DNA of 64,000 nt from Tubulanus polymorphus (lineage: Eukaryota > Animalia > Nemertea): the NCBI RefSeq assembly GCF_964204645.1, contig NC_134033.1:4674231-4738230 (forward strand), in the 5' to 3' direction. The translations under genes were made by a program, and so were the position numbers. Shown here piece by piece: positions 7,001-61,254 of the stretch; position 1 is the stretch's first letter, and each line of letters begins with the position of its first letter. Under the pieces are notes generated by a model. That model saw only the letters and a program-made list of their open reading frames with translations. It had not been told where the DNA came from and searched no databases.

Positions 7001-7805
7001 GCCAGATATTTCGATTTAGAAATCAAACTCGACTGCATTATGTTGTTCGATATTTTCTGGAGTTAATCCATAGCCTGGACTCAAAAGCCCTAACGCAAAT
7101 TCTTTTTCGGGCCATCGTTCCAATTTACCATTCCCGGCACATGAAATAATTCGCCACAAAAGGAAACGGCTCTCCAACATTGCAGAAACATGGGGCCATT
7201 AAACGAGGCCATGAAAAGATGCATTTCGGTCAAAATACTTAATTGTGCAAGTTCACTGCTTTGACCGTTAGAAAACTGCGAAACCGTTTATCATTTGGTT
7301 TACAGTTAAAACCTATCAGTATAGAACCCTACAACCAAGAAATAAGCGGTTTCTTTAGGAGATATGGTGATATTCCCTTGTAATTATGAGATTTCGATTT
7401 TCTACAGGGGAGGATAAATTATGACCGACCCTCACTATATTCTCACATCTCGAATTTGTAAGTTTTTTCAAAGCTTTTGTGATCTGTACAGAGCGCATAC
7501 GGATAAAGGAATTTCACACATCAGTATTTTATATGAATGCGCGCTGTTTTTGAAGTACGCTGTTTTGCTGAGCATAGCGTATTGGTATAGAAAATTATAC
7601 CTCTAGGTGTGAGGATGATAACAAACTAGGAATGGGTGCCAATAGACGTCGAGCGAAGAGAATTGGTAGAGGATTATACGCTCAATGTAAACGCACGAAG
7701 GCAAAGCAACTGTAGACCATAAGATGTAGGCCTACAACATAACTCATGCGCGGCATCGTTCTGAATTTATCTTTCTTGTTGCGAAGAAAACTACGATACA
7801 CCGCG

Positions 7806-8840
7806 ATGGTAAATGAAACGGTCATATGTTGCGGAAAATCATGTGACGGTGCTGAAGGTACGTACACGTACGCTACCATAATGACAATGATTTGTGCGAT
7901 TCTTTACATCATTGGTGGAATCGCCAACAGTCTCGCCTTCGTAGTTCTCCGCTTGATGAAAATTCGAGGAAGCAGTATTCTGTATTTGGAGGTGCTTGCT
8001 ATTGCCGATATGATAAATTGTCTAACTGCGGGAATGTTTGGGCGTGGTTTGCTGATTCTTTCTGAGGATTATCCGTTCGAATATGTTCGGTATAATCGCA
8101 TTTATCAACTGTATTTTCGTCGCCTTTATCTTTACGTTGATTTCATATTCCAGATGACTATGACTACAAGTCCGTGGCTACTTTTCGCATTAAGTATTGA
8201 CCGCTATATAGCGATTAGGTTTCCTCTTTCTGCCATACAGATATGTACAACTCAAAATGCGTTACGTGTTTCGATATCCATTTGGATTCTCACTTTTATC
8301 TTCGAGATACCGACGTTATGGGACAAGGAGACTTATGCAGTGGCGCCCAACCATCCATGCGCATACGTTTATCTTAGAAATTTACTCCTTCTAAACAAAC
8401 AATATGCCATGTATTACGACTTTTTATTTGCTAAAGTTCTGCTTTTATTTGTTCCAGGTATCATCGTTTTAGCGTGTAACGCTCATATGTATTTATTGGT
8501 GCAGGATGCCGCTCGTATGCGACGGAAACTTCAACAAATCGACGATGATGATAAATCGAATTCTACCGATAGTAAACAAGGCCGACAAATAACAATGACA
8601 ATACTAGTTTTAAACATAATATTTACGGTTGAATACATGATGAGTGTTATAAACACGTTTTTGCCAGCGCTTCTGCCGGAAGACGGTAGCAAGACTTGGT
8701 ATCGGCCGTATCATTCCAAACAGTTATTACACGCTATCAATTCGATGATAAATCTATTCGTATATTTGGGTATCCGAAAAGGTTTTGGAAAAACGCTTGT
8801 CTGGTTTATGAGCTGTCATCGACTAGGAAAAGTAATGTAG
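7806..8840 (+). CDS. Intronless class A GPCR, FMRFamide/peptide-receptor-like (candidate chemoreceptor)
   Basis: Seven hydrophobic segments with GIANSL, LAIAD, SIDRYIAIRFP and AINSMINLFVY. ATG 7806 (MVNET, an N-glycosylation sequon) is preferred over 7746. Confidence 0.9.
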   Translation: MVNETVICCGKSCDGAEGTYTYATIMTMICAILYIIGGIANSLAFVVLRLMKIRGSSILYLEVLAIADMINCLTAGMFGRGLLILSEDYPFEYVRYNRIYQLYFRRLYLYVDFIFQMTMTTSPWLLFALSIDRYIAIRFPLSAIQICTTQNALRVSISIWILTFIFEIPTLWDKETYAVAPNHPCAYVYLRNLLLLNKQYAMYYDFLFAKVLLLFVPGIIVLACNAHMYLLVQDAARMRRKLQQIDDDDKSNSTDSKQGRQITMTILVLNIIFTVEYMMSVINTFLPALLPEDGSKTWYRPYHSKQLLHAINSMINLFVYLGIRKGFGKTLVWFMSCHRLGKVM

Positions 8841-10022: not shown

Positions 10023-11120
10023 TTATTTTGAATAACACAGATAACTGATGAGTAATACTTGTTTTGCTTTTTTCCTGAAGCTGTCGTTCGTTGCGCAATA
10101 AACGAAGAAATTTACTGATGAATCAAAAGCACTGAGCAGAATTCCAACTTTGCTCAGGACCATTAGTTCATCTCCGGATAAACTGTGGCGTATTCCTAAC
10201 TCGATTCTGAAGAAATGTAACAATCGCTCTACAGATGCCGGAATTTCGAACACAAAGTACAATAACACAATCAAGAGAACCATTTTTAATATTTTCAATT
10301 CAGCGGATGTGTTTTTACTTTTCTCACTGATCGCCGCTAAGTTAAATTGTTTCTTCTCATCTATTTTTCTAAATATCATGACTCCGAACAAAGTTAGATT
10401 TAACATTATTAGAATAATGAACGGTAAGAGTACCGTCATGAAGATGTAGGTAATGAATGTGAAGTAATACCCATAATCATACCGATAATGAAAAGGTGTT
10501 CGAGTTGTTTGGCCACCAAAGGCTCCCAATGTAAATACACCTGGAACACAAGGATCGGTCGTCCTTCCGGGTAAACGTAGTGGAAAATAATGCGGCCAAT
10601 GACAAACTGCTGAGAAAAACGCGTTGAAAAATGATAAGAATATTATTTGTTTTTTGTTCCAGAATCTTCTAAAATACAGCGGACTCGCGACGACCAAAAG
10701 TCTCTCAAAACTTACTATCACAACCGCCCAGTTTCTAGCAGTTTGAAATGTAAAGAACAGCGGCATCGCCCATGTAATGATTTCGTGTCCAAAATACCAA
10801 TCATCATAGTGCATAAGCAGGTTAGTTTTAGTGGTTCTGCTGAAATCGATGATAATAAGACGAAATGGGTAAAGTACGAATACTGACAACAGAAATAGTA
10901 TTTCAAACCAGGCAAGAATTATAATAGTTTGATAAGTGGTACGACCGATCTTTCTGAATACTACAATAGAAACAGAGTTCAGTATCACTCCCAGAACTGA
11001 AACCGACGAATATCCGAAACGGTACAGATTGACACTGAACACATGGTTCCATCGTGTAGGTGGATGTACACAGTGAGGAGACTCAGCCGTCGTCGATGTG
11101 AATTGTGATGTAAAATTCAT
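10023..11120 (-). CDS. Intronless class A GPCR, FMRFamide-receptor-like
   Basis: Intact 365-aa ORF with MNFT start, GVILN, QTARNW...SFERL, FEIPA and DSSVNFFVYCATNDSFR. Confidence 0.9.
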   Translation of the reverse strand: MNFTSQFTSTTAESPHCVHPPTRWNHVFSVNLYRFGYSSVSVLGVILNSVSIVVFRKIGRTTYQTIIILAWFEILFLLSVFVLYPFRLIIIDFSRTTKTNLLMHYDDWYFGHEIITWAMPLFFTFQTARNWAVVIVSFERLLVVASPLYFRRFWNKKQIIFLSFFNAFFSAVCHWPHYFPLRLPGRTTDPCVPGVFTLGAFGGQTTRTPFHYRYDYGYYFTFITYIFMTVLLPFIILIMLNLTLFGVMIFRKIDEKKQFNLAAISEKSKNTSAELKILKMVLLIVLLYFVFEIPASVERLLHFFRIELGIRHSLSGDELMVLSKVGILLSAFDSSVNFFVYCATNDSFRKKAKQVLLISYLCYSK

Positions 11121-22838: not shown

Positions 22839-23234
22839 AATACACGCTTCAAAACAATCACATTTCTAACTAACCTAAGTTAAAATTCTGGCCATTTCTA
22901 AAATGTTATTGATTATTATTACTAATTTTTAGTCAGTGCGAAACGTTTAGTTTTCCAACAATAATGAGGGGTGGTAGGTAGTCATGCAATTCAAGTCATC
23001 ATTTATTACACGTTACTTCCGTGTTGTTGAAAATCTCGCGAGTCCTGGACTAAACCCCAATGAACAATGTGATCTGTGTGCTGGCCACCAAAATGCACAC
23101 AGATCACACTACACTACCCATTACACACTCCAGTACCCACAGCTTTCATATATCCATCCAAATATTTAGTGGCTTTCTTCCTGGATCTGCCGTTGATAGT
23201 AACTATAGGAGTTATGCTCCGTTGCGGGAGATCT

Positions 23235-24027
23235 CTATTTCGCAGCGCAACAAGCTGAAGCGCAAACACCGCCACACATAACAAGAATTTCGCGTCCGAA
23301 ATAAATATACAGATACAAATTCATGGAGTAATTCATTGACTGTATTAGCGCACTTAACTGATAGGGGAAATCTTGAGTCTGATTTACACCGGTTATTAGA
23401 TAAATCAGGACCAGTATGATGCATAGTGGGATTGAAGTCACGATAAAGAAGACTCAGACCGAAGCCACCATTATCGTGGTAACAACCGTGTATATCGTCA
23501 TAACTGTTAACGGTCAATAGAAACAGACTTATGCCGGCGCAGATGACGAACGTTAAAAACGCCGTTAATGAAGTCTTAGTCGGTGTCCAAAAACTGGGAC
23601 CCGAAAACGGAAATCGGATGATACAAAGACGCTCGACCCCGATCATAATCAGGAGACTGGGTCCGTAGCAAGAGGTGGTGTTGTTGTAGAACTGTTGACC
23701 CGCGCAGAGGAACCAGGAGTTCACGGGTATACAAATCGAGCCGTTGATATGGAAACACAACGTGTTCACTAACGTCCACATGTGAGTCGTCAGAAATATA
23801 AAATCGGAAATCGCGAGCGCGATGAAAAAACGACTGTACGATAGACGGCGTAGTTTACGCGTGGACATTACGAAAACGATCAACACATTGCCGACCGAAC
23901 CAAGAGAAAGAACCGTGAACTGATTGGCGTAATAGAACCATCTGTAGATCGGATATTTGGAGACGATAACCGGGTGCAGAATCGTCTTCGTGTAGCAGAT
24001 AGGATGCGGGTAAACAGTAGCATTCAT
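23235..24027 (-). pseudogene. Class A GPCR with TM5/ICL3 deleted and a frameshift
   Basis: GSVGN, LAISD and GVERLCIIRFP are present. Near 23450 the start of TM5 is joined out of frame to TM6-TM7 (FIVTSIP...NYSMNLYLYIYFGREI). Confidence 0.8.
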
Positions 24028-26914: not shown

Positions 26915-27867
26915 TTACTGCTTATTTGAATATCTGCGGCGGATTTTCATACAGAAAAATTCACAAATTTCTCGTCCCAGTAAAAGATATATGTAGAAAT
27001 TTACCACAAAGTTACAAACATGGAACTGAGTGCAAATGTCAAATATAAAAGCTCTATGTTCCGGGGAGATCGGTAACAACGCCGTTGTAGTAGTTGGGAG
27101 TGTAAATATTGCAAATGCGAGCGAAACGGTAACAAGCATTTTCGTAGTACGTTTTGATTTTGTTGTTTTCTGATCCGACGAAATAATGTTTGAACTTTTG
27201 AATAACTGGACTATAATAACAGAATTCGATATGATGATCAAAACTAACGGTAAAAGGTTGGCGTGGATGACAATTATGGTAAAAAATGTTACTTGGTCAA
27301 GTAATGCGTAGTAACATCCGAAAAATCGGTCGAAAAAATGTATCGACAAAGCGGGTGTGAGATACAGAACCAGTACATTCACTGCAGTAATTACCAGAAT
27401 AGCGAAACTAGCGAATTTCGGTGTACATACCAAACGAGACGTGAACGGGAAGAGCACAACTGCAACACGTTCTAGAGTTATAGCCACAATTAACCACGAA
27501 CTATTACAGGATGCAGTAACCATAACAAATTCATAGATCTGACAACTGATTGAAGAAATCATGATGAATATAGGACCAACGTTTGATTTCAATAGTACAA
27601 ACTGTAAAACAGGCATCAGCGTATAGTTTACACAGTACAGCAAATCACAGACTGACAAAACGATGAGATAGTTAGCGTAAGATAAACTGCGAAATCTGCG
27701 ACTTATCATTATCAGGAACGTAGCTGAATTTCCAAAGGCTCCAAACAGAAACAAGACAGGCGGAATGACCAGTGACACCGTGCGGTAGATTCCAGACCTG
27801 TTCACGACAGACAATATGATGATGTAACTGCTGTAAGTTCGACCGATTTCAAACTGAGTAGTATCAT
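26915..27867 (-). pseudogene. Intronless class A GPCR, close paralog of 30339-31295; the homologous ATG is out of frame
   Basis: The full 7TM frame is open, but the start reads atg-at-act-act-cag against the paralog's atg-aat-tcg-act-cgc (one base missing). The ORF-track start is a TTG. Confidence 0.75.
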
Positions 27868-28291
27868 GATTCACGATGATGCAGACTGAGTAATTCAACG
27901 TAAATTAAATGATGTCGTATTTATTGAAGTAGCTTACAATGTGTTCGCATCTAACAGAAATCCAATTCTGACACATCTACGTATAACACAATTTAAATAT
28001 TCACGTATGTAGTTCGCAAATTTTCATTATTTGTAAACATAATGTAACTAAATTGAATATGAATATTTGTCGCACAATAATAAGATTATATCAGTTTGTT
28101 TCATTCTCGGTGGAGTTAGAACGATTCCACAACGCTGGCTCTGTAAGGTTGGACGACAACCATTTCATTACAAAAATTCATTTCTAGATACTTCTTACCT
28201 GTAGTTTTCAATGACGTACACAATTTGTTAACGGTTAATGTGCAGAATTTGGTAGGGTAGGCAAGCAGGCTATATTCAAAATTTCACAATA

Positions 28292-30338: not shown

Positions 30339-31295
30339 ATGAATTCGACTCGCGTTCAAATCGGTCGAACTTACAGCAGTTACATCATCCTCATGTCTGT
30401 AGTGAACAGGTCTGGAATCTACCGCACTGTGTCATTGATCATTTCGCCTGCGTTGGTTCTGTTTGGTGTCTTCGGAAATTCAGCTACTTTCCTAATAATG
30501 ATAAGTCGCAGATTCCGCAGTTTATCTTACGCTAACTATCTCATCGTATTGTCAGTCTGTGATTTTCTGTACTGTATAAATACGCTGATGCCCGTTTTAC
30601 AGTTCGTTCTCTTACATCCAAACGTCGGTCCTATATTCATCATGAAATCTTCGATCAGTTGTCAAGTCTTTGAATTTGTAATGATACTTGCAGGAAGCAA
30701 TAGTTCGTGGTTAATAGTAGCTATAACTCTAGAACGCGTAGCAGTTGTGCTCTTCCCGTTCACATCTCGTTTGGTATGTACACCGAGATTCGCTAGATTA
30801 GCCATATTCATAATTACTGCAGTGAATGTAATGGTTCTGTATCTCACACCCGCTTTGTCGATACATTTCTTTGACCAGTTTTTCGGATGTTTCTACGCAT
30901 TACTTGACCAAGTAACGTTTTTTACCACAATTGTCATCCATGTCAACCTTTTACCGTTAGTTTTGATCGTTATATCGAACTATGTTATAATAGTTCAGTT
31001 GTTCAAAGGTTCAAAAATGGTTTCGTCTGATCAGAAAACTACAAAATCAAAACGTACTACAATAATGCTCGTTACAGTTTCGCTCGTATTTGCAATATTT
31101 ACACTTCCAACTACTATAACGTCGTTATTACCAGTCTCACCGGAACAGAGAGATTTCCTATTGGACATTTGCACTCAGTTCCATGTTTGTAACTATGTAG
31201 TAAATTTTTACATATATCTTTTACTGGGACGAGAAATTCGTGAGTATTTCTGTCTGAAAATCCACTGTAGAAATTCAGTCAAAAATAACTATTGA
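30339..31295 (+). CDS. Intronless class A GPCR (318 aa); the intact member of the local paralog family
   Basis: MNST start, GVFGN, LSVCD, ITLERVAVVLFPF, FTLP and NYVVNFYIYLLLGREIR. Confidence 0.92.
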   Translation: MNSTRVQIGRTYSSYIILMSVVNRSGIYRTVSLIISPALVLFGVFGNSATFLIMISRRFRSLSYANYLIVLSVCDFLYCINTLMPVLQFVLLHPNVGPIFIMKSSISCQVFEFVMILAGSNSSWLIVAITLERVAVVLFPFTSRLVCTPRFARLAIFIITAVNVMVLYLTPALSIHFFDQFFGCFYALLDQVTFFTTIVIHVNLLPLVLIVISNYVIIVQLFKGSKMVSSDQKTTKSKRTTIMLVTVSLVFAIFTLPTTITSLLPVSPEQRDFLLDICTQFHVCNYVVNFYIYLLLGREIREYFCLKIHCRNSVKNNY

Positions 31296-32618: not shown

Positions 32619-32947
32619 TCAGTACACATCTTGTATCGCTCGTTCATTTCTAGCCCCCGTCAAGATGATCGTTCCACCGTTATGCACGATGCATTTTATT
32701 CGATTATCCGCTGTATACACGAGTCCCGGAAATATTTCCGGTTCGTAACTCGAACTGCTACCAAAGAAATTGTCTAAAGTTTCCAAAGAAATCCGTTTTC
32801 CAGTCTTTTTCACGGCCGAAATTTGAACGCCGTGCTTTGAAATCGGAAATTTTTACTTTACATCCCAATTTTTGCACTTTTCGACCGAATTGTCTCGCCG
32901 CATGTTTGTTCTGAAATATACTTTTCGAACCCGTGATCACCATTTTT
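32619..32947 (-). pseudogene. Divergent TATA-binding-protein-like gene fragment
   Basis: KMVITGSKS...AARQFGRKVQKLG...SDFK, a frameshift near 32835, then SSYEPEIFPGLVY...GTIILTGAR. These match the TBP core motifs KMVCTGAKS, AARKYARVVQKLG, YEPELFPGLIY and GKVVLTGAK. No introns. Confidence 0.85.
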
Positions 32948-33222
32948 CTGACGATCGACGTCAATGGCTGGCACTATTCATTCGCTTTTTTTGCCTTGTT
33001 TAATACGGCCATATTGGCTACGATAATGACGACGTACGCTCAGATATATAGACTCGTATCTGGAAGTAGGTCGGGCTCGGGTAGAGCCGTTCCTACCGAA
33101 CTGGTTTTAGCTCGAAGGAGTTTAGTAATCAATCTTTGTAATTTATTTTGCTGGCTACCGAAAATAATCGTTCAGTTTTGCCCCGTATTTTCGGTCGAGA
33201 TACTGAACCAGGTTGCCGCTTG
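32948..33222 (+). pseudogene. GRL101-like receptor fragment (TM5-TM6)
   Basis: Nearly identical to 1319-1538 (ctgacgatcgacgtcaatggctggcactattc...), and it retains the 55 bp deleted there. Confidence 0.9.
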
Positions 33223-33460
33223 TTATAGAATATAAATTAGAATATTTCGCCATGAATGTTGTCTACGCTTACATTCTACCGTTATCTTTCATCATTCTAT
33301 TGAATTCTGTTATAATAGTTCAGTTATTCAAGAAATCAAAAATTATTTCTTCTGAAAAGAAAACTACAAAATCACAGCGTACAAAAAAAGCTGTTTAACT
33401 CGCGTTTGCAGTATTTGCGCTACCATCCACGTCACTGTATTCCTACCAATCTCGACAGAA
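33223..33460 (+). pseudogene. Fragment (TM5-TM6) of the 30339-type GPCR family
   Basis: ILPLSFIILLNSVIIVQLFKKSKIISSEKKTTKSQRT matches the paralogs' NSVIIVQLFKSSNIISSDQKTTKSKRT. Confidence 0.8.
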
Positions 33461-34512
33461 CTAAAAGACGAACGGTGCAACGAACATAATTAAGTAATTT
33501 CTAGAATCAGCCATAGTAAGAACAGGATTAATAGTATATTAAATTAAATATTTTCACTAGCGGTTGAACCGGCACTTGGACTTTTGTCCAGGCGCAACCT
33601 TGATTGAAAATATCCGAAATTTCTTTGTCATCTTTCTCGCATTTTAGTTTTTCGTACTTTCGTTTTCAAAGTGTAGTTAATTTGATAATCATTAACTACA
33701 GAAGGTAATAACGATCAGTTACCGGTATTAAGGATACGGATTGATTGGACAGTTCATTTTAGGAAAATACCATGTGTGGTATTTTTGTGGTCTGCTAAGT
33801 AATTAGTTATACGTCCTCGCTGTTACTGTTGATGGCCTGTCGTCTGCTCAAGTTGTTCGCTCATTGTTCGTCCTCTGGATTCTCATGCCGTGGGAATTAT
33901 AAAGGCTTTACATAGTCTTAAGACGGACACATGGAAATAGAATTTGCAACACCGAAATACATTTATAGTTAGTAGTTTGTACTGAGGACGTGTAGTACGA
34001 TGTTATACCGTGTAAAAACCTCTTTTTCGGATAAACTTGTTACAACCAGCCGGGAACCGAATGGCATCACGAATTGGAGGTTAGTGAATTTTGGCTGAGT
34101 TTTCTCTGATGACAGTTTTAGATTTTTGGCAGTTGCTGTACCTAGTGTATCAGCAGTAAACGATGAAAGAAATTTGATGTTCCGAAGTAATATCGAAATC
34201 CATTTTAATGAATGTATATATTACCTACTGTTACTATCTGGTGGTTTTATTATTCTTGTACAAATAGGACAAATTAGTGAAGCGTCATAAACCGCCATAA
34301 ACATATTAATAATTCACTCCTGATCTATATAGTAATTGTCACGACACGATATTTAACGCATCACCGGTTTTAATGTCGTTTTCGCACAATGATTTCAACT
34401 GTAAATTTAATGATGAAATCGGAAGTGTTACAGTTATGAAACGTGTACCGGGTTTCCGTGTTTCTCACGGGTTGTACTGACATAAAAAGTCGTTGTGATT
34501 GTTGCAAGGAAT

Positions 34513-34913
34513 TTTAACAAAACTAATTGTTCTAACTCGTCTTTCGGGGAAGCTCCAGCTACGATTAAATCCTGAGTTATGCAACAATGAGAAAGCTAGT
34601 AGTTTTCAGCACTAAACGTAGACGATTTTATTCTTTAGATTCTCAATCGAGTAGCTTGGGAATTTGCCTGCAAGATGTATCAGGCTCCAAGACTCGTCTC
34701 AAACTCAACTGCTGTTCATGGATTTACATTCTATTTATATAATACTATAAAAGTTGACAGACATGTTTGAGCACACAATTAATTACAAAACAAACTGTTA
34801 TCACAGGTGTCGAATTGACAGATGTCTAACTGATTGTGTGAGTAATAATTAATTAATGGTGAATTAAAACAACAGCGCGATTAAAAGTGTACATGTATAT
34901 TATTTTTGCTAAA
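34513..34913 (-). repeat. 3' LTR
   Basis: No difference from 36743-37143 on base-by-base reading. Minus-strand TATA-like tatataaata and an AATAAA are present. Confidence 0.95.
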
Positions 34914-35277
34914 TCCTTCCTTACTATCCTTCAAACTTTTGTCCGCAAAAGCTGAATAGAATATCAACATGTTTCGTAATCACAGTAAAAAGAGTTTTAC
35001 TAAATTCATTCCTGCCATACACACGTATTTTCGTCGTCGTTAAAGTTCACGATATACGGGTTTTCACTGCCCGCTAACTTCAATGGCGTAACTCTGTTCG
35101 TTGATGGCGGCAATGTTCTGAGAATGAATTATATTGCGATTCAGAAAGAGACCGAAATTTACAGTTCCGTTCTCAAATTCTATCGGTGTGGACAACCAGG
35201 ACAGACATCACACAAGTAAACATGCATTGATGAGAATTCTATTAATCTAAAGTCTAGGGAATCGTAATATATTTGTA

Positions 35278-36630
35278 TCAGTCAAATTTAGATTTTATGT
35301 CTAAGAGCAGTGGTAACGTAAGACCATAGTCTTTGGCTATATTAGTTAATTTCAAATCATCATTTAACCTAAATCGTTGACCTTTTTTAATTTCACAAAC
35401 TAAAAACATACTTTCAATTTCCAATGCATAAAATTCCTTAAGCCATGTATCTCGCATTTCGCATTTAAGATCCCTCACTGATGTGTCACCAGGGACGAAT
35501 ATATTCTTTTGCATCTGTATTTGGAAAGGCTCAGAAAATGCTTTAATCATACGTGGACGATTAATCACTGTAACGGGGACGTGGATACCTAGATCCAATC
35601 CACTGCCAGTGTCAACCTTGCGAAAAGGTTTTCTAAATCTACGTTGTGGCCTATAGCTAGCCAGGTCCCACGACGCAATTTGTTCCGGTTCTACCTGCTG
35701 AGATTTTGGATTTAAGCTGGCCGAGTTATTTTTAGTATTATCCAAATGCTCAGCTAAGGCAGTACATTCTGATATTTTGACCGGATTAACAAACATGCGC
35801 TCTCTCTCCAAGATTGTTAACTTGTTTTTAAGATTTTCGTTATCTTCTGACAATTGGTCACTAATCTTTTTGATGCTCTGTTTATGTTGTTCGTTTTTAC
35901 TGATTTGCCTTTTTAACTGTTCTATTTTACATATTTGTTCTGTATTTTGCGATCGCCACTTCTCTAGTTCAAAATTCAATTCGGTTATTTCTTGACTCAG
36001 AGTGGTTTTGTTAGCTTTCTGTTCCACTATTACTTTGGTGTCAGATAATTGATTTGCTAATTTGTCAGTATCAATTTTGGCTTTGGCTACAATACCTTCC
36101 TTATGTTTCTGTTCGAGTCTAAATGCCAAATTTTCAGATTCTAATTCCTCGTTAATAATTTGCAAAATTTTCATATCTCGTTTAAATTTAAAAATTTCAT
36201 TTCTGTAATTTTGGTGACTAGAGTTAACCTCTACGAACATTGCAGTTCCTAATGAATTAAAGGGCATTTGGCGAGCTATGAATTTTCTAAGATTGTATTC
36301 TTGAAATCTTATTTTATCTCTTGATTTCTGCTTTTCACATTTAATTTTAATTTTAGGTTCGTTTGTTATATTATTTTGAATTGAGCATTTATTATCTATT
36401 CGCGTATTCCTGAATCTACAACATCGAACGAAATGTCCTATTCGCTTACAAAGATTACACCTAGATATCAATGCATGACACTTGTGTGAATAGACCATAT
36501 CCCACTTACCACACCGTTCACATTTATCATGGAAGTTCTTTGGCACTTGAAGATAAATTCTTTGATGCTGGGTTTTTCCATCATGGTAGTTTCTCCACTC
36601 CAATGGCTGGTCGTTGATGAAGAACGTCAT
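35278..36630 (-). CDS. LTR-element ORF: N-terminal Gypsy-type zinc knuckles, coiled coil, putative ubiquitin/Atg8-like C-terminal domain
   Basis: CERCGK...HKC and CNLCKRIGHFVRCC, a heptad-rich region at about aa 140-280, and a C-terminal VPVTV...FVPGDTSVRDL...MFLV. Intact 450-aa ORF in the element's sense orientation. Confidence 0.8.
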   Translation of the reverse strand: MTFFINDQPLEWRNYHDGKTQHQRIYLQVPKNFHDKCERCGKWDMVYSHKCHALISRCNLCKRIGHFVRCCRFRNTRIDNKCSIQNNITNEPKIKIKCEKQKSRDKIRFQEYNLRKFIARQMPFNSLGTAMFVEVNSSHQNYRNEIFKFKRDMKILQIINEELESENLAFRLEQKHKEGIVAKAKIDTDKLANQLSDTKVIVEQKANKTTLSQEITELNFELEKWRSQNTEQICKIEQLKRQISKNEQHKQSIKKISDQLSEDNENLKNKLTILERERMFVNPVKISECTALAEHLDNTKNNSASLNPKSQQVEPEQIASWDLASYRPQRRFRKPFRKVDTGSGLDLGIHVPVTVINRPRMIKAFSEPFQIQMQKNIFVPGDTSVRDLKCEMRDTWLKEFYALEIESMFLVCEIKKGQRFRLNDDLKLTNIAKDYGLTLPLLLDIKSKFD

Positions 36631-36742
36631 GATTTTCTTATCTCGCTCAGGTGCTGATGACTGTTTATATGCTTCAGATGATTATTGTAGCTGCGTTGTT
36701 GACAAATAGGTACCAGTTCTCTGCTCACGGGTTCTCCACCAA

Positions 36743-37143
36743 TTTAACAAAACTAATTGTTCTAACTCGTCTTTCGGGGAAGCTCCAGCTACGATTAAAT
36801 CCTGAGTTATGCAACAATGAGAAAGCTAGTAGTTTTCAGCACTAAACGTAGACGATTTTATTCTTTAGATTCTCAATCGAGTAGCTTGGGAATTTGCCTG
36901 CAAGATGTATCAGGCTCCAAGACTCGTCTCAAACTCAACTGCTGTTCATGGATTTACATTCTATTTATATAATACTATAAAAGTTGACAGACATGTTTGA
37001 GCACACAATTAATTACAAAACAAACTGTTATCACAGGTGTCGAATTGACAGATGTCTAACTGATTGTGTGAGTAATAATTAATTAATGGTGAATTAAAAC
37101 AACAGCGCGATTAAAAGTGTACATGTATATTATTTTTGCTAAA
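36743..37143 (-). repeat. 5' LTR
   Basis: On the minus strand it begins tttagcaaaa, ends ttttgttaaa and is followed by the PBS. Confidence 0.95.
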
Positions 37144-38242
37144 GAATATCATTATATCTATCTGTATCGATGTACCACTGACTACAGCGTTCGTGCCGAT
37201 AGTTCGGTTCCCCGCTGTCCCAGGGTAGGATTGCGATAGTGGTATTATCTGATCTCAAAAACCCACGGGCCGCGCATTGACCCGGAATTCGTCTGCAAAT
37301 CATATCCACCTAACATAGGTTTATAAACGACTTCTGAAAAAGAAATATAAATGTTAGAAATAATTGTGCACTCCATTTCAACCATTTTAAGGGTGGCGCC
37401 TTTTGACCCGGTAACTCAAAAGGATAACTGATATATGGTGTGAAAACTGAAGATACGGTATGGCAGTAACTAACCAGAGAAAATGGCCTAAGAGCTTCAG
37501 ATAATAGGTGATGGTTTAGACTCCACGATATTTCGCAATCCCACGTCTAAATCAACAACCTGGTATTATTACCAGAAAGTTCATTCAAACTCGTTTAATG
37601 ATAGGACTTCGGCTACAAAAATGTTCAAACTTTGTTTCTTATTTCTGTAGGGTTTAAAAGTTGAGCCGGCCGGCCACCCAATCTACCGTGCATCGCTTTT
37701 TTAATCATGATCAAACTAACAATAACAGACCCGACAGTTATAGAAATGACATCATTACAAATTTTATGGCAGTTTACAAAATTTACCCGGTCGATTAGAA
37801 GAAACAAGGTATGAATTTATTCTAGCTTTAAAATCTATCAATATGAAGTTAGACGTACCATTTTTGTCGATGAGATATTTCCTCAAGGCAGCCCTCGATT
37901 GTGAAGTGCGGGGTTCAGCAAGTATCCAACCGTGATAGGTACAGAAACTTGCCGCGTCTGTGACGGTCGCACTTTTATAAGCGTTACTGTTCCATCGGAA
38001 AACGTGATAGCAAATTCCATTCGCAACGAAAAATCCAAATCTACAAGATCCGTGTTCTACAAACAGAGGAATATATAATATATATATATATATATATATA
38101 CATATCCGATATTCTCAAAAAGACGATTTCAAATAGCCCGATTAACATGATTTATGCGAATATTCTAGAGCTTCTCTAGAGCTGGAATCATTTATTCACT
38201 TATGAATTAAAAATACGTTGTAAGATCTCGAGAAAAATACCT

Positions 38243-41339: not shown

Positions 41340-41545
41340 AGTTATCTGACCAAATTTCTGCAGCGGATTTTCATACAGAAATATTCCACGAATTTCTCGT
41401 CCCGGTAAAAGATATATGTAGAAATTTACCACGAAGTTACACATTTGTAACTTTGCAAATTAGCCATAAAGAAATTCACTCATGTTCTTGTGAGATTTGG
41501 AAAAAAAGTGACAGTAGTGGATGGAACTGTAAATATTGCAAAGTA
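41340..41545 (-). pseudogene. TM6-TM7 and C-terminal fragment of the 30339-type GPCR family
   Basis: gcggattttcatacagaaa...tttctcgtccc...aaaagatatatgtagaaatttaccac matches 26938-27020. Confidence 0.8.
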
Positions 41546-42720: not shown

Positions 42721-43814
42721 ATGTAAGGCGTATTACTACGCTTTTACATTTCAGCTTGCGCATTAATTCCCCGATTTACTCCAAAAGTATATCTACACGT
42801 TGCACTACAATGTCGTATATCGGACTTGGGCCTGTACCCCTCACCCTGTTTAATCGAATATTCGGTTTAATCGCAGGGACTGTATGTAGTGAGTCTGACG
42901 AATTCTGAAAAGTGGCCACTTTCGGAAAAATTTATATCAGGCTCTGATTAGTGCTTAATTTTCAGGTAATACCTGGTAATGTTTGAAAAATTCCCATCGG
43001 ATTAAAGAATAAAACGCATTTAAAAGTTAGAAATTCCGTTGTTTTAATTTTTGCCGCAAAAACCTACTACGATTTTTCTAGCAAGGTCTATGGTTTGTAT
43101 GTTCATACTTCAATTATTACGTCAAATATGAGAAGATAAATTTATAATACAAATATTTAAATCTTAGTGGACCCATTATTTGTTATAAATTTTCAATAAT
43201 TGTTCGTATGAAATTATGATTAAATGTATTACCAAGTTTGTTCCCGGCGTTATTATGAAATTAACTTACATTACCGAGTTAGTAATGATAGACTAGGATA
43301 TTTTGAGGGGACATATTTTCCAGGACATTTTTTCTGGGGACATTTTTCCCATTGACATATTTTCCAGGACATTTCTTTTCGGAAGATTTTACCGTATACC
43401 AAATCCAACATTTGGCTTCCGTCGGATTTCTCGGTAAATGAACCAATCAGCGAACACAACAACAAATGCCTACTCGTCTGGAAGAAAATTGTCAGAATCA
43501 TCATCATCGATATCGATTTGTTTAAACTTATAAAACAGATTATTATCATATAAATGTATCAACTTCGAAATATCGATGATGCTTTGTTAAACGTACAAAT
43601 GTTTCGAGCGTTGAGGAACAGGTAACTATTTCTCCATTGAATCCATACGATGATTTACACACTTATAACGTAAAAGTATATAGAATTCAAGGTCATTCGA
43701 ATTGACGCACGAAAGAAGTCTGCGAGGACGTTTGGGAAATCTATATAACTTTCGAGATAGTTTCATAGTAATCAGCGAGCCGTAATTGAGAGTGAAGTCT
43801 GATTGGTCGACGCG

Positions 43815-44759
43815 ATGGCTGCAACTTCAGTTCATCGGAACCGCACGAATCCCACTAATATCTACACAAGCGTCGTACTCGCAGCGAGTACGATAAACGG
43901 AACCTATCTGTGGTGTTACCTCGTATTCGCCAGTCTTTGTTTCGTGCTCGGATTTGGCGGCAATCTCCTCATCTTAATAGTTATGCTGCGACGTAATCTA
44001 TGGCGACGTTCATTCAGTCGCATGTTCGTTCAGCTGGCCGTCTGCGACACATTGGTTCTCATCGGTTACTTCGCCAAATATATCAACGTTATATCATATG
44101 CATTTTATGGAAAATTACTGGTCAAACCGTCGACGCGAATTCAATGTATACTTTTTGAGTATTTTATATCGGTTGGACTTTCGAGCAGTCCGTGGACGCT
44201 GGTCCTCGTATCCGCCGAGCGAATGTGCGTCGTTTGTTTTCCGTTTAGAGGTCCTCGTTTCTGGAGCCCGAATACAGCGTCGAAACTCTGTTTCTCCGTA
44301 ATCTGCTTCATAGCGCTGATCTACAGTTTTCTATTTGTAACTATTGACGTTAGTGATAACGGTTGTACCTTTAAAGATGTGCTCACATTTACCAAGCCTT
44401 TGCTGTCGTCGATTCTCATCTCTATCGGCCCGTGTATTTTGTTAGCGATCACGTCCGCCATAACTTCCATCACGTTATTCAACAAAAGGGGAGACTCAGG
44501 AACAACCCGAGCATCTAAATACTCAAACCAGGTAACCGTGTTGGTTCTGGTACTGTGCGTTTTCTTCATGGTTACGACATTCCCCGCCACTTTAGTGAGC
44601 CCTTTCGTCGGGACTAATGCGGGATTAAAAAAAATTTTCACCGCCCTCACCGATATTCTAATGATAAACTTTTCGTTCAATCTCTACTTGTATCTGATGA
44701 CGGGAAAAGAGATCAGAAACGAATTGCGGAGTTTGTGCTTCGCAAAGAAACCGTCGTGA
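43815..44759 (+). CDS. Intronless class A GPCR, peptide-receptor-like
   Basis: GFGGN, LAVCD, SAERMCVVCFP, TTFP and INFSFNLYLYLMTGKEIR. First ATG at 43815; tatataa at ~43742. Confidence 0.9.
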   Translation: MAATSVHRNRTNPTNIYTSVVLAASTINGTYLWCYLVFASLCFVLGFGGNLLILIVMLRRNLWRRSFSRMFVQLAVCDTLVLIGYFAKYINVISYAFYGKLLVKPSTRIQCILFEYFISVGLSSSPWTLVLVSAERMCVVCFPFRGPRFWSPNTASKLCFSVICFIALIYSFLFVTIDVSDNGCTFKDVLTFTKPLLSSILISIGPCILLAITSAITSITLFNKRGDSGTTRASKYSNQVTVLVLVLCVFFMVTTFPATLVSPFVGTNAGLKKIFTALTDILMINFSFNLYLYLMTGKEIRNELRSLCFAKKPS

Positions 44760-47925: not shown

Positions 47926-49001
47926 ATGAACTCGACTTCAAATTACGCGAATGAAACTTATCCCCAAGAACGACACCTCTATGGCGCGTCCTGCTACTTC
48001 TATTTTGTCTATCCAGTGGATTTGGTGAACACTATGAACCGGTCGATAAAGTGGGTACACATTGTTTGCACCTCGTTCTTTATTGTCTTCGGTCTGATGA
48101 CGAATGTCGTATCATTAATCGTTATGATGATGCCGAAAATGCGCAAGAGCTCGTTCGCGGTCTACCTGGCAGCTCTAGCCATAAGCGACGGCGGTAATTT
48201 GATACTGCACAGTATTTTCTGGATTAATTACATCAGCGCCCTTTCGGGTAGACCGTTGGTCATCGTGGTCTTTGGAGGGTTCGCAAAGAGCTTTATTTTG
48301 CCGCTTTGAGCAGTTGGTTAGTAACATTGATAAGTATTGAACGTTTTATCGTTGTCTGTTTTCCGATGTCAGCGTCGCGTTTGTGTCGCCGTGGATCGGC
48401 ACGTGGCGCCACCTGTTGCACGGTTCTAAGCGTCCTTTGCGTAGTGTTAATCGACGGTTCCCTGCGTCCATGGATGAACTACCACACCAGTTGTAGGATA
48501 CCCAATCGACGCCACGACTCACGCGCTTTAGGGACTCTAATGATGGGCTACCTGCCTTTTATCATTATAACGTTTTGTTGCGTGAGTATAGTCGCAGTTT
48601 TGAGACTCCGCAGTGCTAGAATGCCGATCGCCGCCGTCAAATTAACCAATAACAGAGTTACTCGTCTTATGCTTCTCGTAATGCTCGTTTTTCTCGTTCT
48701 GTTATTTCCTACTATAGTTTCTCTTACTCTAGTAACCGTGCTCCCACACTTACGAGAAGTTCTGCAATTGGTATCGAGTTCAATGTCCGTCATTCTTTCA
48801 GAAATAAGCTATTCAGTCAATTTCCTCATTTACGCATTGGCCAGTCGAAAGGTGAGGGAAGCGTTTGCTGAAAAGTTTCTTATTTGGTCGACAGATGGCA
48901 CTCGTAGCAACATCCGATTAAGGGATCGAATGAATAACAAAATTAAGTCCAAAGAGACAACGGACTCTCCTACACCCGCTATTAATGCTAGTGAACCTTA
49001 A
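47926..49001 (+). pseudogene. Class A GPCR with a frameshifting deletion at ECL1/TM3
   Basis: MNSTSNYANET...GLMTN...LAISD in one frame and LYFAALSSWLVTLISIERF...SYSVNFLIY in another. The break is at ~48265-48290 and the TM3 cysteine is missing. Confidence 0.82.
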
Positions 49002-53011: not shown

Positions 53012-54083
53012 ATGAATTTCAGTTCGCAGACAACTTCACTACTCTCTACAACTACTAGAAATCCCTGCACACCTTACGTATTCCAAAACGTATTGTCAAT
53101 CAGCGTAAAACTAGCTGGAGGTTTTCCTATCCGTATCGTCGGAATAATTTTGAATTATTTCAGCATTGTGATTTTACGTCGCCAAACTTCAAATCACATA
53201 TCGCTCTACATTCTGCGATGTCTGGCAGTGGCTGACATAATCTTTCTTACATTTCACATAATTCAAGAGCCTTTTCGTTTCATTGTCTCCGGTTTGACCC
53301 AGGGTAGTCATATGTTCCTGATTCCTACGAGTATGAGTTGGGGTGTTCGGCCATGGATCTATCTGGTAGCTTGGTTACCGAGAAACTCAGCGCAAGTGAC
53401 AAGGAACTGGATAACTGTACTGCTAGTTTTAGAAACTAAGGTCCTTTTCTATCGCTAGGCCATTCTTCGCTAGAACTCATTCCACAATACCAAGGGTAAG
53501 AATTGTAGTTTGTTGTCTCTATATTATTTTTGGTATCTTAGGCTCTCCATTGATTATCGGTACTACAGTAGGTATCTGGTTTTATGACGAATGTAATAAA
53601 GTCGTCATAAAATCAATCCGCGGAGCAAGCGATCCCATACGAAGATACTTTCTCACTGAAATATTTACGTGGATTGATCACTTTGCTAGTCCTTTGTACA
53701 AAGAAATCCTGCCTGCCATAATGCTAATAATTTTCAACAGCCATCTGATATGGACTCTTAGAAAGATAAGTTCAAGGAGAAAACAAATTACACACGAAGG
53801 CGAACAAAGGCTAGACGTGAAAGCTATCAGGATAGCTGTAGCTATTGTTATTCTGTTTATCGTCTGTGAAATCCCTGCTTCGTTCCGATCTTATAACGAT
53901 TTCATCGGTCGCTTCGTCAAAATGCCACCTATTAAATACTCTACCACGATTTATATGCTTCAAGTACTGTTTACCGATCTTTTACCGACCTTGAACTCGT
54001 CTGTAAATTTCTTTATCTATTACTTAGCAAACGTTAATTTTAGAGAAACTGCAATAAAACTGTTGAGAAGGCGGCCAATTTAA
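53012..54083 (+). pseudogene. Class A GPCR related to 10023-11120, frameshifted at the ER motif
   Basis: MNFS...GIILN...LAVAD...QVTRNW...VLE, then an indel at ~53434-53445. It resumes SIARPFF...CEIPA...NSSVNFFIYYLANVNFR. Confidence 0.85.
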
Positions 54084-56510: not shown

Positions 56511-57236
56511 ATACATAATAGTTTCCATTTCCATTTTCTGTTTCCATTTTCTGTGGAAAAGACTCTCAGACCTAAATTTGAACCATACAAATCATGAGAA
56601 TTATAGTGCAGACTCGACACAATTTCAACCGAAGTCTTCGATGCAAGCTGGTGATGTTTTGTTTACCTTGGATTTTATATTTCCCTCAGCCTAATTTCAA
56701 AGTGAAATTAGGGTGATTTAGTGATTTAAAAGCAACTGTCAGCTGGTCATTTTACAATAAACGGGCAATATGTAACAATCCGTAGTTTTCGGTTCGACAC
56801 CATTAACTTAGCCATTCAAAAATACGCTGTGCTCGGTCATGCACGACCGTTGCATTTCAACATTACATACCAAATAAACATGGTATACATGTACTAACCT
56901 TCTCTACTAAAAAATTAATTACGATTATGGCATATGAATTAGCAGTCTTAAAGAATGGTTAACACATTTTCTCAGACACCTTGTATTTGAAATGTATATG
57001 TTAATATATCGAAGTTGGGTCAGTCGTGGTATCATTAAGACAGTGGTGCTGGTACCCCAGTGCCTTTAAACTGTTCATTGACCCGTATTACGACAAAACA
57101 TATATATCAAAATGGCGGCGTAGACACAAACACATTTCCGAAGCTCCGCTTAAAAGTTGGTTTAAGGTGGTCCGGTGTAAGTTTTTTTGTGGATTTTTTT
57201 CGTTATATCGCATCATTGGTACTGTGGACGTTCACT

Positions 57237-58193
57237 ATGGTTGGTGGAAATGGTAAAAAGAAACGCAATAAGTCTGGATCTGATGTTACCGCGGCAAAAC
57301 GTCGTGATCAGAAAAAGACCCCTAACAAGAATCCAGAATGTACTGGTGACATAGGTGACTGTTCATCCGAATCGAGTGATCACGGTGATAAGCCTAATAT
57401 AGACAGCGGAAATGATAGCAATGCGAGTCTCGGTGATATTGTTGCTATGTTGAGCGACATGTCAACGAAATTAAATCGGTTGGAGCCAATCGAAAAGGCA
57501 ATGGAAAATCTGTGCACAAAATATGACCAACTGTCGACTGATAACAAAATCACGAATGAAAAAATCGGTACATTGACCGCCGAAGTTGGCCGTTTACGCA
57601 TGAAAAACGTGAAGTTGAGCAATACCGTGCTCGACTTACAATCACGATCTATGAGGGGTAACCTCCTCTTTTTCGGCGTGCAGGAGGAAAAAGATGAAAT
57701 CGTGGCAGATGGAATCTACAACATTTTAACGTCGGAGGCTGGAATAAATGATGCGCGTGACAGAATAAAGTTTGTACGTGCACACCGTGTCGGAAAATAT
57801 AGTGCTGGAACTGTGCGACCGATTGTCGTTAAGTTCCACTTTTACCCTGATAGGGAAGAAATTCGTGGAAAATCCGCACTTCTGAAATCTCGTGGTCTTA
57901 GAATCGCCCAACAAGTCCCTAAAGAAATCCGAGAACGTAGAAAAGCGTACAACAACGTTGTGGAGGAGGCAATTACCAGAGGTGATAAATTTCATTTCAT
58001 TGGAGACAAACTTTACCTGAACAACCGCTTGTTCCAATTCAATGAGAAAGATTCAACGACACCCCCATCCAGACTTAATAAGAACGGGCTGGACAGCCAG
58101 ATTGTTATCGATCGCGAACAGAGGCACAATAGCGATGTCGGTGACGCGAGTGATGCCTTGCGCGAGGCACGTGCCACCCTCGATATGGAATAG
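57237..58193 (+). CDS. LINE ORF1p (coiled coil plus RRM-type, L1 ORF1-like)
   Basis: LQSRSMRGNLLFFGVQE, RAHRVG, RPIVVKF, PKEIRERRK and GDKLYLNN. First ATG at 57237. Confidence 0.88.
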   Translation: MVGGNGKKKRNKSGSDVTAAKRRDQKKTPNKNPECTGDIGDCSSESSDHGDKPNIDSGNDSNASLGDIVAMLSDMSTKLNRLEPIEKAMENLCTKYDQLSTDNKITNEKIGTLTAEVGRLRMKNVKLSNTVLDLQSRSMRGNLLFFGVQEEKDEIVADGIYNILTSEAGINDARDRIKFVRAHRVGKYSAGTVRPIVVKFHFYPDREEIRGKSALLKSRGLRIAQQVPKEIRERRKAYNNVVEEAITRGDKFHFIGDKLYLNNRLFQFNEKDSTTPPSRLNKNGLDSQIVIDREQRHNSDVGDASDALREARATLDME

Positions 58194-58226
58194 GAAAGCG
58201 TCGGAAATAATAATAACGCGGAACGA

Positions 58227-60393
58227 TTGAAACTCTGTTTCTTAAATATTAAAGGATTATTCAGTCGGAAAGCTGGTACACGGACATGTAAACTGGAAAC
58301 CTGGAACTCTAAAGACACCGTATTTTCAGTACCCAGTGGATATACGTTTTTTCAAAGTACGAGAATGAAAAACCCTCGCGCGCGTCGAAATTCTGGCGGA
58401 TTGTTGCTACTTTTTAAATCCGAATTACGGCAGGGTATTGAATTATTAGAAAATAACCATCCTGATATTTTATGGGTGAAATTATCAAAAGAATTCTTTA
58501 ATTTTGAAAGAGATATGTTTATTTGTTTAGTGTATGTAGCTTGTGATAATCGTGGCACGGATGACTTCTTTCATGATCTGAGTTGTCAGATACTTGCTCA
58601 TCAACTTGATGGCAATGTATTGGTGGCTGGTGACATAAATGCACGGACCAATGTATACTCGGGTCTCCCTCCCGATCCGGATGCTATTAATATGCAATTC
58701 CTTGAGTTCGAACATGGGGTACGAAAATTACTTGAAGACCATGATATTGACACAACTAGATCATCTCAAGATGATACTGTTAGACCAGATATTAGAGGCA
58801 TGAATATGATAAACATGTGCATAGGTTGTAATTTGTTAATATTAAACGGTAGGGCATTTCAGGATAAATCGGTTGGAAAGTTTACGTGTCATCAACCAGG
58901 TGGCAAAAGTGTGGTCAATTATGTATTAGCCGATTTTAACATGATTGATATACTGTCTGACTTCCACGTGTCTGACGAATTACCTTTCTCTGACCACGCG
59001 ATAATTTCTTTTAGTTTGCAGGCTAGGATTGATAAACACGATAATACCTCAAATACAAATTTTACGTCCCATAACAAAACTACTTGTCACAAATTCAAAT
59101 GGCGTAAAGAAAGGGAAGTTGAATTTGCTCAGTATATGCATTCAGATGATACCCAATCTTACCTCAACGATATTATAAACAATGCAATTAATAGAGAACA
59201 TAATGAGTTTTCAATTAACGAATTGGTTAACAATTTTTCAAAATTCTTCCAGACAGCGGTCGAAAAAGTTCATGGTTCATTTCAAAATTCGAGGAACATG
59301 AATAACAATAGGCCTATATCATGGTATGACGGCTCGTGCAGAAAAGCACGAAACGTGTTCAGCCGGGCAGTGCACCGACACAGATTGTGCCCGAATGATT
59401 TAAACCGATTTCTGGTCAAAGAAGCACGGGATAAATACAAGTCCACTATAAATAGTGCTAAAGCATTGTATGATGAACGTATGCTGGATGACCTGCTGAA
59501 AGCGCTAGATTCAAATAACCACAGAGATCTATGGTCCAAATTTAAAGGGCCCAATGAATACGTTGATACTCAACTAAGCATTGATGACTTATACGAGCAT
59601 TTTAAAAGTATCTAGTATGAAGATCGCCCTCCACTGGATGTTGATATCGACGTATCTGATCACATACTTGATCAGCAAATCACATTGGAGGAGGTTAATA
59701 GAGCATTTAAAATGCTAAAAAGAAATAAATCTGCAGGAATAGATGGTATAAAAGGCGAGGTATTTATCGCTGGTGGCAACCCAATTGTTACTCAACTTAC
59801 TATTCTTTTTAATATTATATTAGATAGTGGACGCTATCCCGAATCATGGAGCACTGGCTATATTGTTCCACTACACAAGGGTGGTTCAAACAATTCAGCA
59901 AATAATTACAGGGGCATAACCATCTTGTCGGTATTTGGCAAACTCTTCTCAATAATTTTGAATACTAGATTAACTTCATGGTGTGAGGCATACTCTGTTC
60001 TATCGGAGGCGCAAGCTGGCTTTAGGCCAACTTATAGTACAACGGACCAAATATTTGTATTGAATTCGGTTATAAATCACCTGTTAAACAAGAATTGCAA
60101 ATTATACGCGGCCTTCATTGATTTTCGAAGGCGTTTGATTTGGTTGACCGCTCGTTATTACTACAACAACTCTCTGTGAGTGGGATCTCGGGTAAAATAT
60201 TATGTATTATCAAATCTATGTATATGTCCACAAAATCATGTGTAAGATATCAAAACCATTACTCTGATTATTTCATTTGTGACACAGGGGTCAGACAGGG
60301 TGAATGTCTATCACCTTTACTTTTTAGTCTCTTTATCAATAACAAGGAAAGCTGTGTGAAATCCGGAAATTATGAGGGAATTGATATGGGAAC
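58227..60393 (+). pseudogene. LINE ORF2 (AP endonuclease and reverse transcriptase), disrupted
   Basis: APE motifs LNIKGL, ETW, SGG, GDINAR, LNGR, SVVNY and SDH. In-frame stop at 59613. RT motifs NYRGITILS, QAGFR, FIDF (frameshift at ~60128), AFD and GVRQGECLSPLLF. Confidence 0.9.
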
Positions 60394-61254
60394 CAGGGGC
60401 GGATCCAGGGGATGGGTAGACAGTATTGGAAGGAAATTTAAGGGCACCTTTCTGATCTTAGGGCACACCCAGTATCCAGGTCAATGCGAGCGCCGAAGGT
60501 GCGAAGTCCTTAGAGGGGGGTCTGGGGGCCGACCCCCATAAAATTTTGAAAATATGGTACCATTTAAAGGCTTTTAGAGGGCTACTAGAGGCTAGCAGAG
60601 CAATCCAGAATAAACGAATTCGAGACAAGATTTCAACACATGCGGATAAAAAATGAAGCCGGCGAACCCATGAAAGAATGGTTGTCGCCAACTTCGCCTA
60701 GTGCCCCTATAATCTTTATAAGTGCCCCTTAACAATTATACAGAATACGGCTAAGTGCCCCTTCATTGTTAACAATCGGCAAAAATTGCCTCGTCTTCAC
60801 ATTTATCCTTATGTCGTGTGCCATCTTCCAAGCCAAAAGTGCCCCTAAAATTTTAAAAATTAGGCAAAAAGTGCCCTTTTCTTCAACATTTTCCGCGTAT
60901 CGTGCCCTCTTCTAAAGTTCGAGTGCCCCTTTAGCCCTCCCTGAAAAGGCAAGGAAGGACAAGGTGCCCTCATCTAAAGCAGGAGTGCCCCTTGCAAAAG
61001 GAAAGTGCCCTTTTTAATTTATCATGATTAAAGGCTTTACAAATATGATTATCTCTCCTCACTTTCTCGGCAGCGGTATATACCGATTAATTTTATAATT
61101 ATGCCCGGATTACGGACACTGAAATAGCGGTTGCTGAAATAATGCCGTCAAAAATATTGCCGGTAAAATTTCGAAGGGCACTTAAAAATTCGAGACCTCG
61201 GGATTTTTTGACTGTCTTCCGGAAGGCATGGAAGGCACCCTGGATCCGCCCCTG
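60394..61254. mobile_element. Non-autonomous DNA transposon (hAT-like MITE, 861 bp)
   Basis: TIRs caggggcggatccaggg / ccctggatccgcccctg and many internal gtgccc(t/c) motifs. No clean TSD. Confidence 0.8.

Follow-up and report, generated by a model that had tools for sequence, protein, structure and literature searches.

A young LTR retrotransposon without pol, 2631 bp in length, occupies positions 34513-37143 of the window (the whole 64-kb stretch of DNA analysed here) on the minus strand, and one copy of it was examined (Table 1). The repeat search returned 300 nt of direct repeat, which extended base by base to a pair of LTRs identical at 401/401 positions, indicating that the element is very young. 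The LTRs carry TTTAGC...GTTAAA ends in place of the canonical TG...CA, and their termini form an imperfect inverted repeat. The 4-bp sequence GAAT lies directly outside both LTRs, where an exact match between two 4-mers is expected by chance at a rate of ~1/256. Within each LTR, a TATA box (TATATAAATAG) is followed by an AATAAA signal, which is the order expected for a U3-R-U5 arrangement. Of the features by which an LTR retrotransposon is recognised, paired direct repeats, a target-site duplication and a polypurine tract (GAAGGATAGTAAGGAAGGA) next to the 3' LTR were found. A TGG-initiated, PBS-like sequence (TGGTGGAGAACCCG) is located next to the 5' LTR, and TGGTGGAGA may resemble the complement of the 3' end of a tRNA-Ala. 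As for its tRNA partner, the window holds no tRNA gene, and none of the 5 tRNAs in the retrieved loci matched TGGTGGAGAACCCG. The PBS region also matches the 3' flank over 10 nt, which is no more than chance would give. Neither a second copy nor a solo LTR was detected within the window, and an Rfam search of positions 33500-38000 gave no match. Rhodopsin-type GPCR genes without introns also lie in tandem in the window, a gene content that has an invertebrate look.

Table 1 Features of the LTR element and of its ORF, in coordinates of the window
Feature	Position	Strand	Basis or remark
5' LTR (sense orientation), 401 bp	36743-37143	-	read from sequence
3' LTR, 401 bp	34513-34913	-	repeat search and extension
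Target-site duplication GAAT (+ strand), upstream copy in element orientation	37144-37147	.	flank ...GCTAAA/GAATATC
Target-site duplication GAAT, downstream copy in element orientation	34509-34512	.	flank ...AAGGAAT/TTTAAC
TATA box TATATAAATAG, putative promoter in U3 of the 5' LTR	36964-36971	-	LTR position 173
AATAAA polyadenylation signal, 3' LTR copy given	34627-34632	-	LTR position 282
PBS-like sequence TGGTGGAGAACCCG, TGG-initiated	36728-36741	-	1 nt past the 5' LTR
Polypurine tract GAAGGATAGTAAGGAAGGA, 19 nt, adjoining the 3' LTR	34914-34932	-	read from sequence
Sole ORF, 450 aa, ATG to TGA (stop codon included)	35278-36630	-	orphan protein
Deviant Cys/His motif, aa 37-52, CX2CX8HXC[H]	36475-36522	-	sequence; LIN-28 alignment
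Canonical CCHC zinc knuckle, aa 58-71, CX2CX4HX4C	36418-36459	-	exact spacing
Predicted long helix or coiled coil, aa 139-280	35791-36216	-	composition, AF2, heptad analysis
Linker, aa 281-350, Pro/Ser/Gly-containing, with basic patch RPQRRFRKPFRK	35581-35790	-	sequence, AF2, composition
C-terminal ~100-aa domain, aa 351-450, claimed to be Atg8-like	35281-35580	-	no database match; AF2 pLDDT 40.9

An arrangement of this kind could in principle also arise without any retroelement, if a 2230-bp unit were partially duplicated in tandem and an ordinary host gene thereby came to lie between direct repeats of 401 bp. The identity of the repeats, their ends other than TG...CA and the single copy seen would all agree with such an event. 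However, a duplication of this type does not account for the 4-bp repeat lying exactly outside both LTRs, for the TGG that begins 1 nt past the upstream repeat, for the 19-nt purine tract adjoining the downstream repeat, for the TATA box and AATAAA in correct order, or for the symmetry of the repeat, both ends of which read TAAA-3'. We therefore regard a tandem duplication as extremely improbable.

The internal region between the LTRs is 1829 bp long and holds a single ORF, which lies on the minus strand and encodes 450 aa, in agreement with the position given for it in an earlier note on this DNA. This frame is open for 467 codons from stop to stop. When the internal region was simulated 2000 times under a first-order Markov model (Markov-1), the longest ORF averaged 94 +/- 20 codons and never exceeded 190, showing that the ORF is not a product of chance. 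The length of the internal region and a 3' UTR of 364 nt, in which stops close all three frames, leave no room for pol. Correspondingly, no Pfam match to a protease, a reverse transcriptase or an integrase was obtained at E<=10 in the sole ORF, and the protease, reverse transcriptase/RNase H and integrase that make up the pol of an autonomous element are absent. These data substantiate the view of the earlier note that the locus is a young, pol-less LTR element. Since the LTRs are identical, the intactness of the ORF is uninformative about selection in the present copy.

We then considered the ORF product part by part. Only 36 residues precede its Cys/His region, which means that no capsid-like region lies ahead of the knuckles, as had been stated before. 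The description of the knuckles themselves as two of Gypsy type applied to one of them. The second motif (C58-x2-C61-x4-H66-x4-C71) has the exact spacing of zf-CCHC and is canonical, but the first (C37-x2-C40-x8-H49-x1-C51) is deviant and, in an alignment with LIN-28, has Met at the canonical His position; in Pfam, zf-CCHC scored 7.6 bits (E=5.9), which is below threshold. A search against PDB sequences gave a weak colinear alignment with the LIN-28 knuckle pair that was not significant (E=3.3). The canonical knuckle lies inside a basic stretch, aa 37-138, with a net charge of +14.

Behind the basic N-terminal third, the segment aa 139-280 lacks Pro, has 1% Gly and is rich in E, K, Q, L and I. 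AlphaFold2 (AF2), run on the single sequence, predicted one unbroken helix over aa 139-277, where pLDDT reaches 86; no other stretch of the model is of any confidence. In addition, heptad a/d positions are enriched in aa 139-280, most strongly at ~aa 197-294, and the Pfam search with the whole ORF gave weak matches solely to coiled-coil families. The Pro-free composition, the unbroken helix and the heptads point to a coiled coil rather than a globular capsid domain, and the long coiled coil that had been proposed to follow the knuckles is accordingly upheld by these predictions.

This region bears directly on whether the ORF could be a true but fast-evolving Gag, left behind when an autonomous parent lost pol by internal deletion. 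In that case, the helical middle would correspond to a diverged capsid region, and the protein itself would either assemble virus-like particles directly or enter them. CCHC knuckles are a hallmark of Gag and its nucleocapsid (NC), structural proteins of transposable elements (TEs) in this genome do escape Pfam, and gag-only non-autonomous LTR elements, termed TR-GAG, are a recognised class (PMC13570524). In contrast to the order in a Gag, the knuckles stand ahead of the helical region and not behind it. Moreover, a capsid is a bundle of short helices, whereas aa 139-280 are predicted to form one unbroken helix, without Pro and with 1% Gly. Neither Retrotrans_gag nor any other Gag family was matched at E<=10, and no similar protein was found in the searches described below. 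A diverged Gag is therefore a rather unlikely identity for the ORF product.

No relative of the ORF was retrieved when the full length, aa 1-135 and aa 136-320 were compared with a word-indexed protein database, and an exhaustive phmmer search of aa 320-450 against 1.84 billion representative proteins returned nothing at E<=0.001. Scans of metagenome and viral contigs identified no related locus, and a PDB sequence search with the whole ORF gave nothing significant. The exact ORF is itself absent from a collection of 15 billion proteins and from its gene index, although the source chromosome OZ123234.1 (GCA_964204645.2, 16.5 Mb) is included there. Evidently, the collection lacks gene calls for the TE ORFs of this genome, so that the lack of homologues partly reflects a gap in coverage, and other copies would be invisible to these searches. 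A neighbouring adhesion-type GPCR of 865 aa is on record for OZ123234.1. The window also contains a LINE-like ORF1, which is unrelated to the 450-aa ORF and likewise gave no Pfam match; orphan structural proteins of TEs are thus normal in this genome.

Some plant LTR elements carry fragments of host genes. By analogy, the ORF, or its coiled-coil and C-terminal parts, might be a captured host sequence that travels as a passenger without a role in transposition. The architecture of the protein, which is unlike that of Gag, would fit such an origin, as would the coiled-coil and C-terminal parts, which bear no signature of a TE family. Against it, the searches turned up no host-like relative for any of the three parts, with the C-terminus compared with the 1.84 billion representatives and the rest with the word-indexed database, and nothing related occurs elsewhere in the window. 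Host capture is, in our opinion, quite unlikely.

The C-terminal region required closer examination. The earlier note had aligned the last ~100 aa by eye with Atg8/GABARAP as a colinear match, and had proposed that the element may carry an RNA-binding, oligomeric protein with a ubiquitin fold, possibly an autophagy decoy or an adaptor to particles; the reading weighed here takes in both an Atg8-like and a generic ubiquitin-like beta-grasp. Its observation that the Gly needed for lipidation is lacking was correct. The protein ends in ...DIKSKFD (GLTLPLLLDIKSKFD), with the last Gly ~14 residues from the end and none in the last 14 residues, and the exposed C-terminal Gly of Atg8-type proteins is thus absent. 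In Pfam, aa 320-450 matched no family at E<=10, ATG8 and ubiquitin included. The PDB is rich in LC3 and GABARAP chains. A phmmer comparison of aa 320-450 with PDB chain sequences also returned nothing at E<=10.

For direct comparisons, an Atg8 reference set was collected by scanning metagenome contigs with the back-translated motif KYLVPxDLTVGQF, which yielded 39 distinct, uninterrupted natural ORFs of 111-131 aa with pairwise identities of 39-100%. None of these (0/39) carries all five fragments of the Atg8 sequence used in the earlier note. An HMM built from the 39 sequences and run without filters (--max) scored the C-terminus at -1.1 bits, compared with -0.75 +/- 1.25 for shuffled sequences, and 1367 of 3000 shuffles scored as high as the real C-terminus or higher. 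Smith-Waterman and semi-global scores of the C-terminus against the 39 Atg8s fell inside the range of shuffled queries. A comparison by hhalign assigned Atg8 a probability of 0.65% (P=0.088 for one comparison). It aligned 20 columns, and the sole stretch concerned was KNIFVPGDTSV against K(K)YLVPxDLTV, a short local likeness that is one of the few points in favour of an Atg8 or beta-grasp relationship.

The five fragment pairs of the by-eye alignment sum to 57 in BLOSUM62, with identities of 4/10, 5/14, 1/7, 0/12 and 2/7. When the same five fragments were placed colinearly, they scored 59 against 26 +/- 8.3 for shuffles of the query, of which 2/2000 reached 59; this apparent support is biased, because the fragments had been picked after the match was seen. 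We therefore set beside it a free-block control, in which five colinear blocks, ungapped and equal in length to the fragments, were given their best-scoring placement in both sequences. Shuffled Atg8 sequences then scored 70.5 +/- 7.3 and real Atg8 sequences 69.9 on average. Since 70.5 exceeds 57, the by-eye alignment lies below what chance yields for sequences of such composition.

Structural considerations lead in the same direction or weigh little. The stretch that matches the position of the N-terminal helices of Atg8 is rich in Pro, Gly and Arg, which speaks against an Atg8. The single-sequence AF2 models are of low confidence (mean pLDDT 42.8 over the full length and 40.9 over aa 340-450), and although they are helical at that position, this counts for little; they are equally too low in confidence to speak for or against a generic beta-grasp. 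A hydrophobic-moment scan of aa 340-450 was too crude to tell a beta-grasp from other folds. With profile, pairwise, hhalign and free-block scores all at chance level, the claimed colinearity with Atg8/GABARAP did not hold, and membership of the Atg8/GABARAP/LC3 family was found neither by sequence nor by profile. As judged by sequence, the Atg8 resemblance is a chance by-eye alignment. The effector proposed on its basis likewise lost its support, and we consider an Atg8-like or other beta-grasp C-terminus very improbable.

Overall, our best reading is that the element is probably a non-autonomous LTR retrotransposon of gag-only-like type, mobilised in trans by a helper, and that its orphan protein forms oligomers and binds nucleic acid; RNA binding, oligomerisation and dependence on a helper are all suggested by the motifs. 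According to this proposal, the 5' LTR would drive transcription of the element, with polyadenylation in the 3' LTR, and the resulting RNA of ~2.1 kb would serve both as mRNA for the ORF and as template for reverse transcription. A host tRNA would prime at the PBS, and the polypurine tract (PPT) would prime the plus strand. All enzymes would be supplied in trans by an autonomous LTR element, so that both reverse transcription and integration would be carried out by the helper, the integrase of which would accept the TTTA...TAAA termini and make 4-bp duplications. The ORF product might, by analogy, take the place of Gag. The N-terminal third, basic and bearing the CCHC knuckle, would bind RNA in a nucleocapsid-like manner, the coiled coil of ~140 residues would render the protein oligomeric, and the C-terminal domain of ~100 residues would dock the RNP onto the particle or machinery of the helper. 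Because the knuckle comes first and a capsid domain is lacking, unlike in a normal Gag, the term Gag substitute is to be taken as an analogy only.

As it stands, the locus represents a single young copy of a non-autonomous LTR element that is unclassified and carries an orphan ORF, something often met in invertebrate genomes. Should the family prove real and the ORF conserved within it, this would be a parasitic LTR element of gag-only type from an animal, with a protein built like LINE ORF1p and not like Gag. Such an element would bear on the question of how non-autonomous retroelements bring their RNA into the machinery of a helper.

Among known systems, Atg8/GABARAP/LC3 proteins share with the C-terminal region a similar length and one short VPxD(L/T)(T/S)V-like motif. 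In contrast, no similarity above chance is seen by profile, by pairwise alignment or against PDB sequences, and the ORF has neither the C-terminal Gly nor evident N-terminal helices. The likeness to nucleocapsid proteins lies in the canonical CX2CX4HX4C motif in a basic context, and that to LIN-28 in a knuckle spacing colinear with its double knuckle, at the non-significant level reported above. The ORF differs from both in its first knuckle, which lacks the canonical His position, and in its sub-threshold Pfam zf-CCHC match.

In TR-GAG elements, the ORF is a recognisable Gag. The present element resembles them in its layout of LTR, PBS, one ORF, PPT and LTR without pol, and is presumably mobilised in trans as well. 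It differs in its animal-like host, in the N-terminal position of the knuckle and in an ORF without detectable homology to Gag or capsid, for which Pfam offered no Gag family at E<=10 and the protein searches no related protein. The TR-GAG literature that we found consists of plant studies throughout (PMC13570524). In terms of size, the terms TRIM (<1 kb) and LARD (>4 kb) leave the range of 1.5-4 kb unnamed, and the element, with 2.6 kb, falls within this part of the continuum (PMC13570524).

Among the ORF1 proteins of LINEs, type II combines a coiled coil with an RRM and a CTD, and type I an RRM with a CCHC knuckle (PMC4120745). The present protein shares these building blocks with LINE ORF1p, and probably their logic, in that a coiled coil would serve oligomerisation while a CCHC knuckle or a small globular domain would bind nucleic acid. 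Compared with type II, the coiled coil is present and no match to Transposase_22 or an RRM was obtained; nor is there any similarity to the LINE-like ORF1 of the window. Moreover, the ORF sits in an LTR element, and its parts follow the order knuckle, coiled coil and C-terminal domain. Going by these sequence comparisons, the element is a non-autonomous LTR retrotransposon whose only ORF is non-canonical and conforms to neither TR-GAG nor LINE ORF1p. By analogy, the logic of its protein would nevertheless be nearer to LINE ORF1p than to a capsid-forming Gag. A bolder proposal, which we consider unlikely, is that an LTR lineage has replaced its capsid-forming Gag with a LINE-ORF1p-like protein, made up of an N-terminal CCHC knuckle, a long oligomerising coiled coil and a new globular domain at the C-terminus, whether a beta-grasp or not, which would tether the element's own RNA to helper particles. 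Such a replacement, if true, would represent a convergence of the strategies of LTR and non-LTR retroelements.

The window is an array of rhodopsin-type GPCR genes, which lack introns and lie in tandem on both strands. Pfam analysis confirmed the 7tm_1 domain in two of these genes. Several members of the array, such as those at 2581-3375, 26915-27898 and 30339-31295, are close paralogues, and some look truncated. In addition, the 865-aa ORF has a database record with PF00002 (7tm_2) and DUF8401, which is placed on OZ123234.1 (GCA_964204645.2) at ~4.69 Mb. By these domains, this ORF is an adhesion/secretin-type GPCR.

Features in the window surrounding the pol-less LTR retrotransposon
Feature	Position	Strand	Remarks
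Rhodopsin-type GPCR array members	653-1441, 2581-3375, 7746-8840, 10023-11120, 23212-24027, 26915-27898, 30339-31295, 43803-44759, 48306-49001, 53012-54083	both
Isolated ORF, 135 aa	4740-5147	-	RVT_1, E=1.3e-4
Single-exon ORF, 865 aa	16152-18749	-	on record in NCBI/UniRef
Inverted repeat, 66 nt	31177-31242 and 41387-41452		86% complementary; arms 10 kb apart
Two short overlapping ORFs	32933-33398		~1.1 kb from the LTR element
Cys-rich ORF, 115 aa	38243-38590	-	~1.1 kb from the 5' LTR of the element
LINE-like element	57060-60541	+	ORF1 and ORF2 pieces

Pieces resembling GPCR genes also lie near the LTR element. By eye, the two short overlapping ORFs are similar to parts of two different GPCR paralogues, in which a C-terminal part of the 653-1441 type is followed by a repeat (33245-33387) sharing 75% identity with positions 30920-31062 of the gene at 30339-31295. 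This ORF pair is probably a mosaic pseudogene. Because one arm of the 66-nt inverted repeat is within the same gene at 30339-31295, the other arm may be a paralogue fragment on the opposite strand. The Cys-rich ORF on the 5' LTR side had no Pfam match at E<=0.001.

Sequences of other retroelements were also present. The LINE-like element contains a 377-aa ORF1, which has a coiled-coil-like stretch and no Pfam match, and a downstream ORF2 broken across several frames, in whose pieces Pfam detected RVT_1 at 59685-60179; the element is probably a decayed copy. The 135-aa ORF covers the C-terminal part of the reverse transcriptase domain and is a piece of another retroelement, unrelated to the LTR element at 34513-37143.
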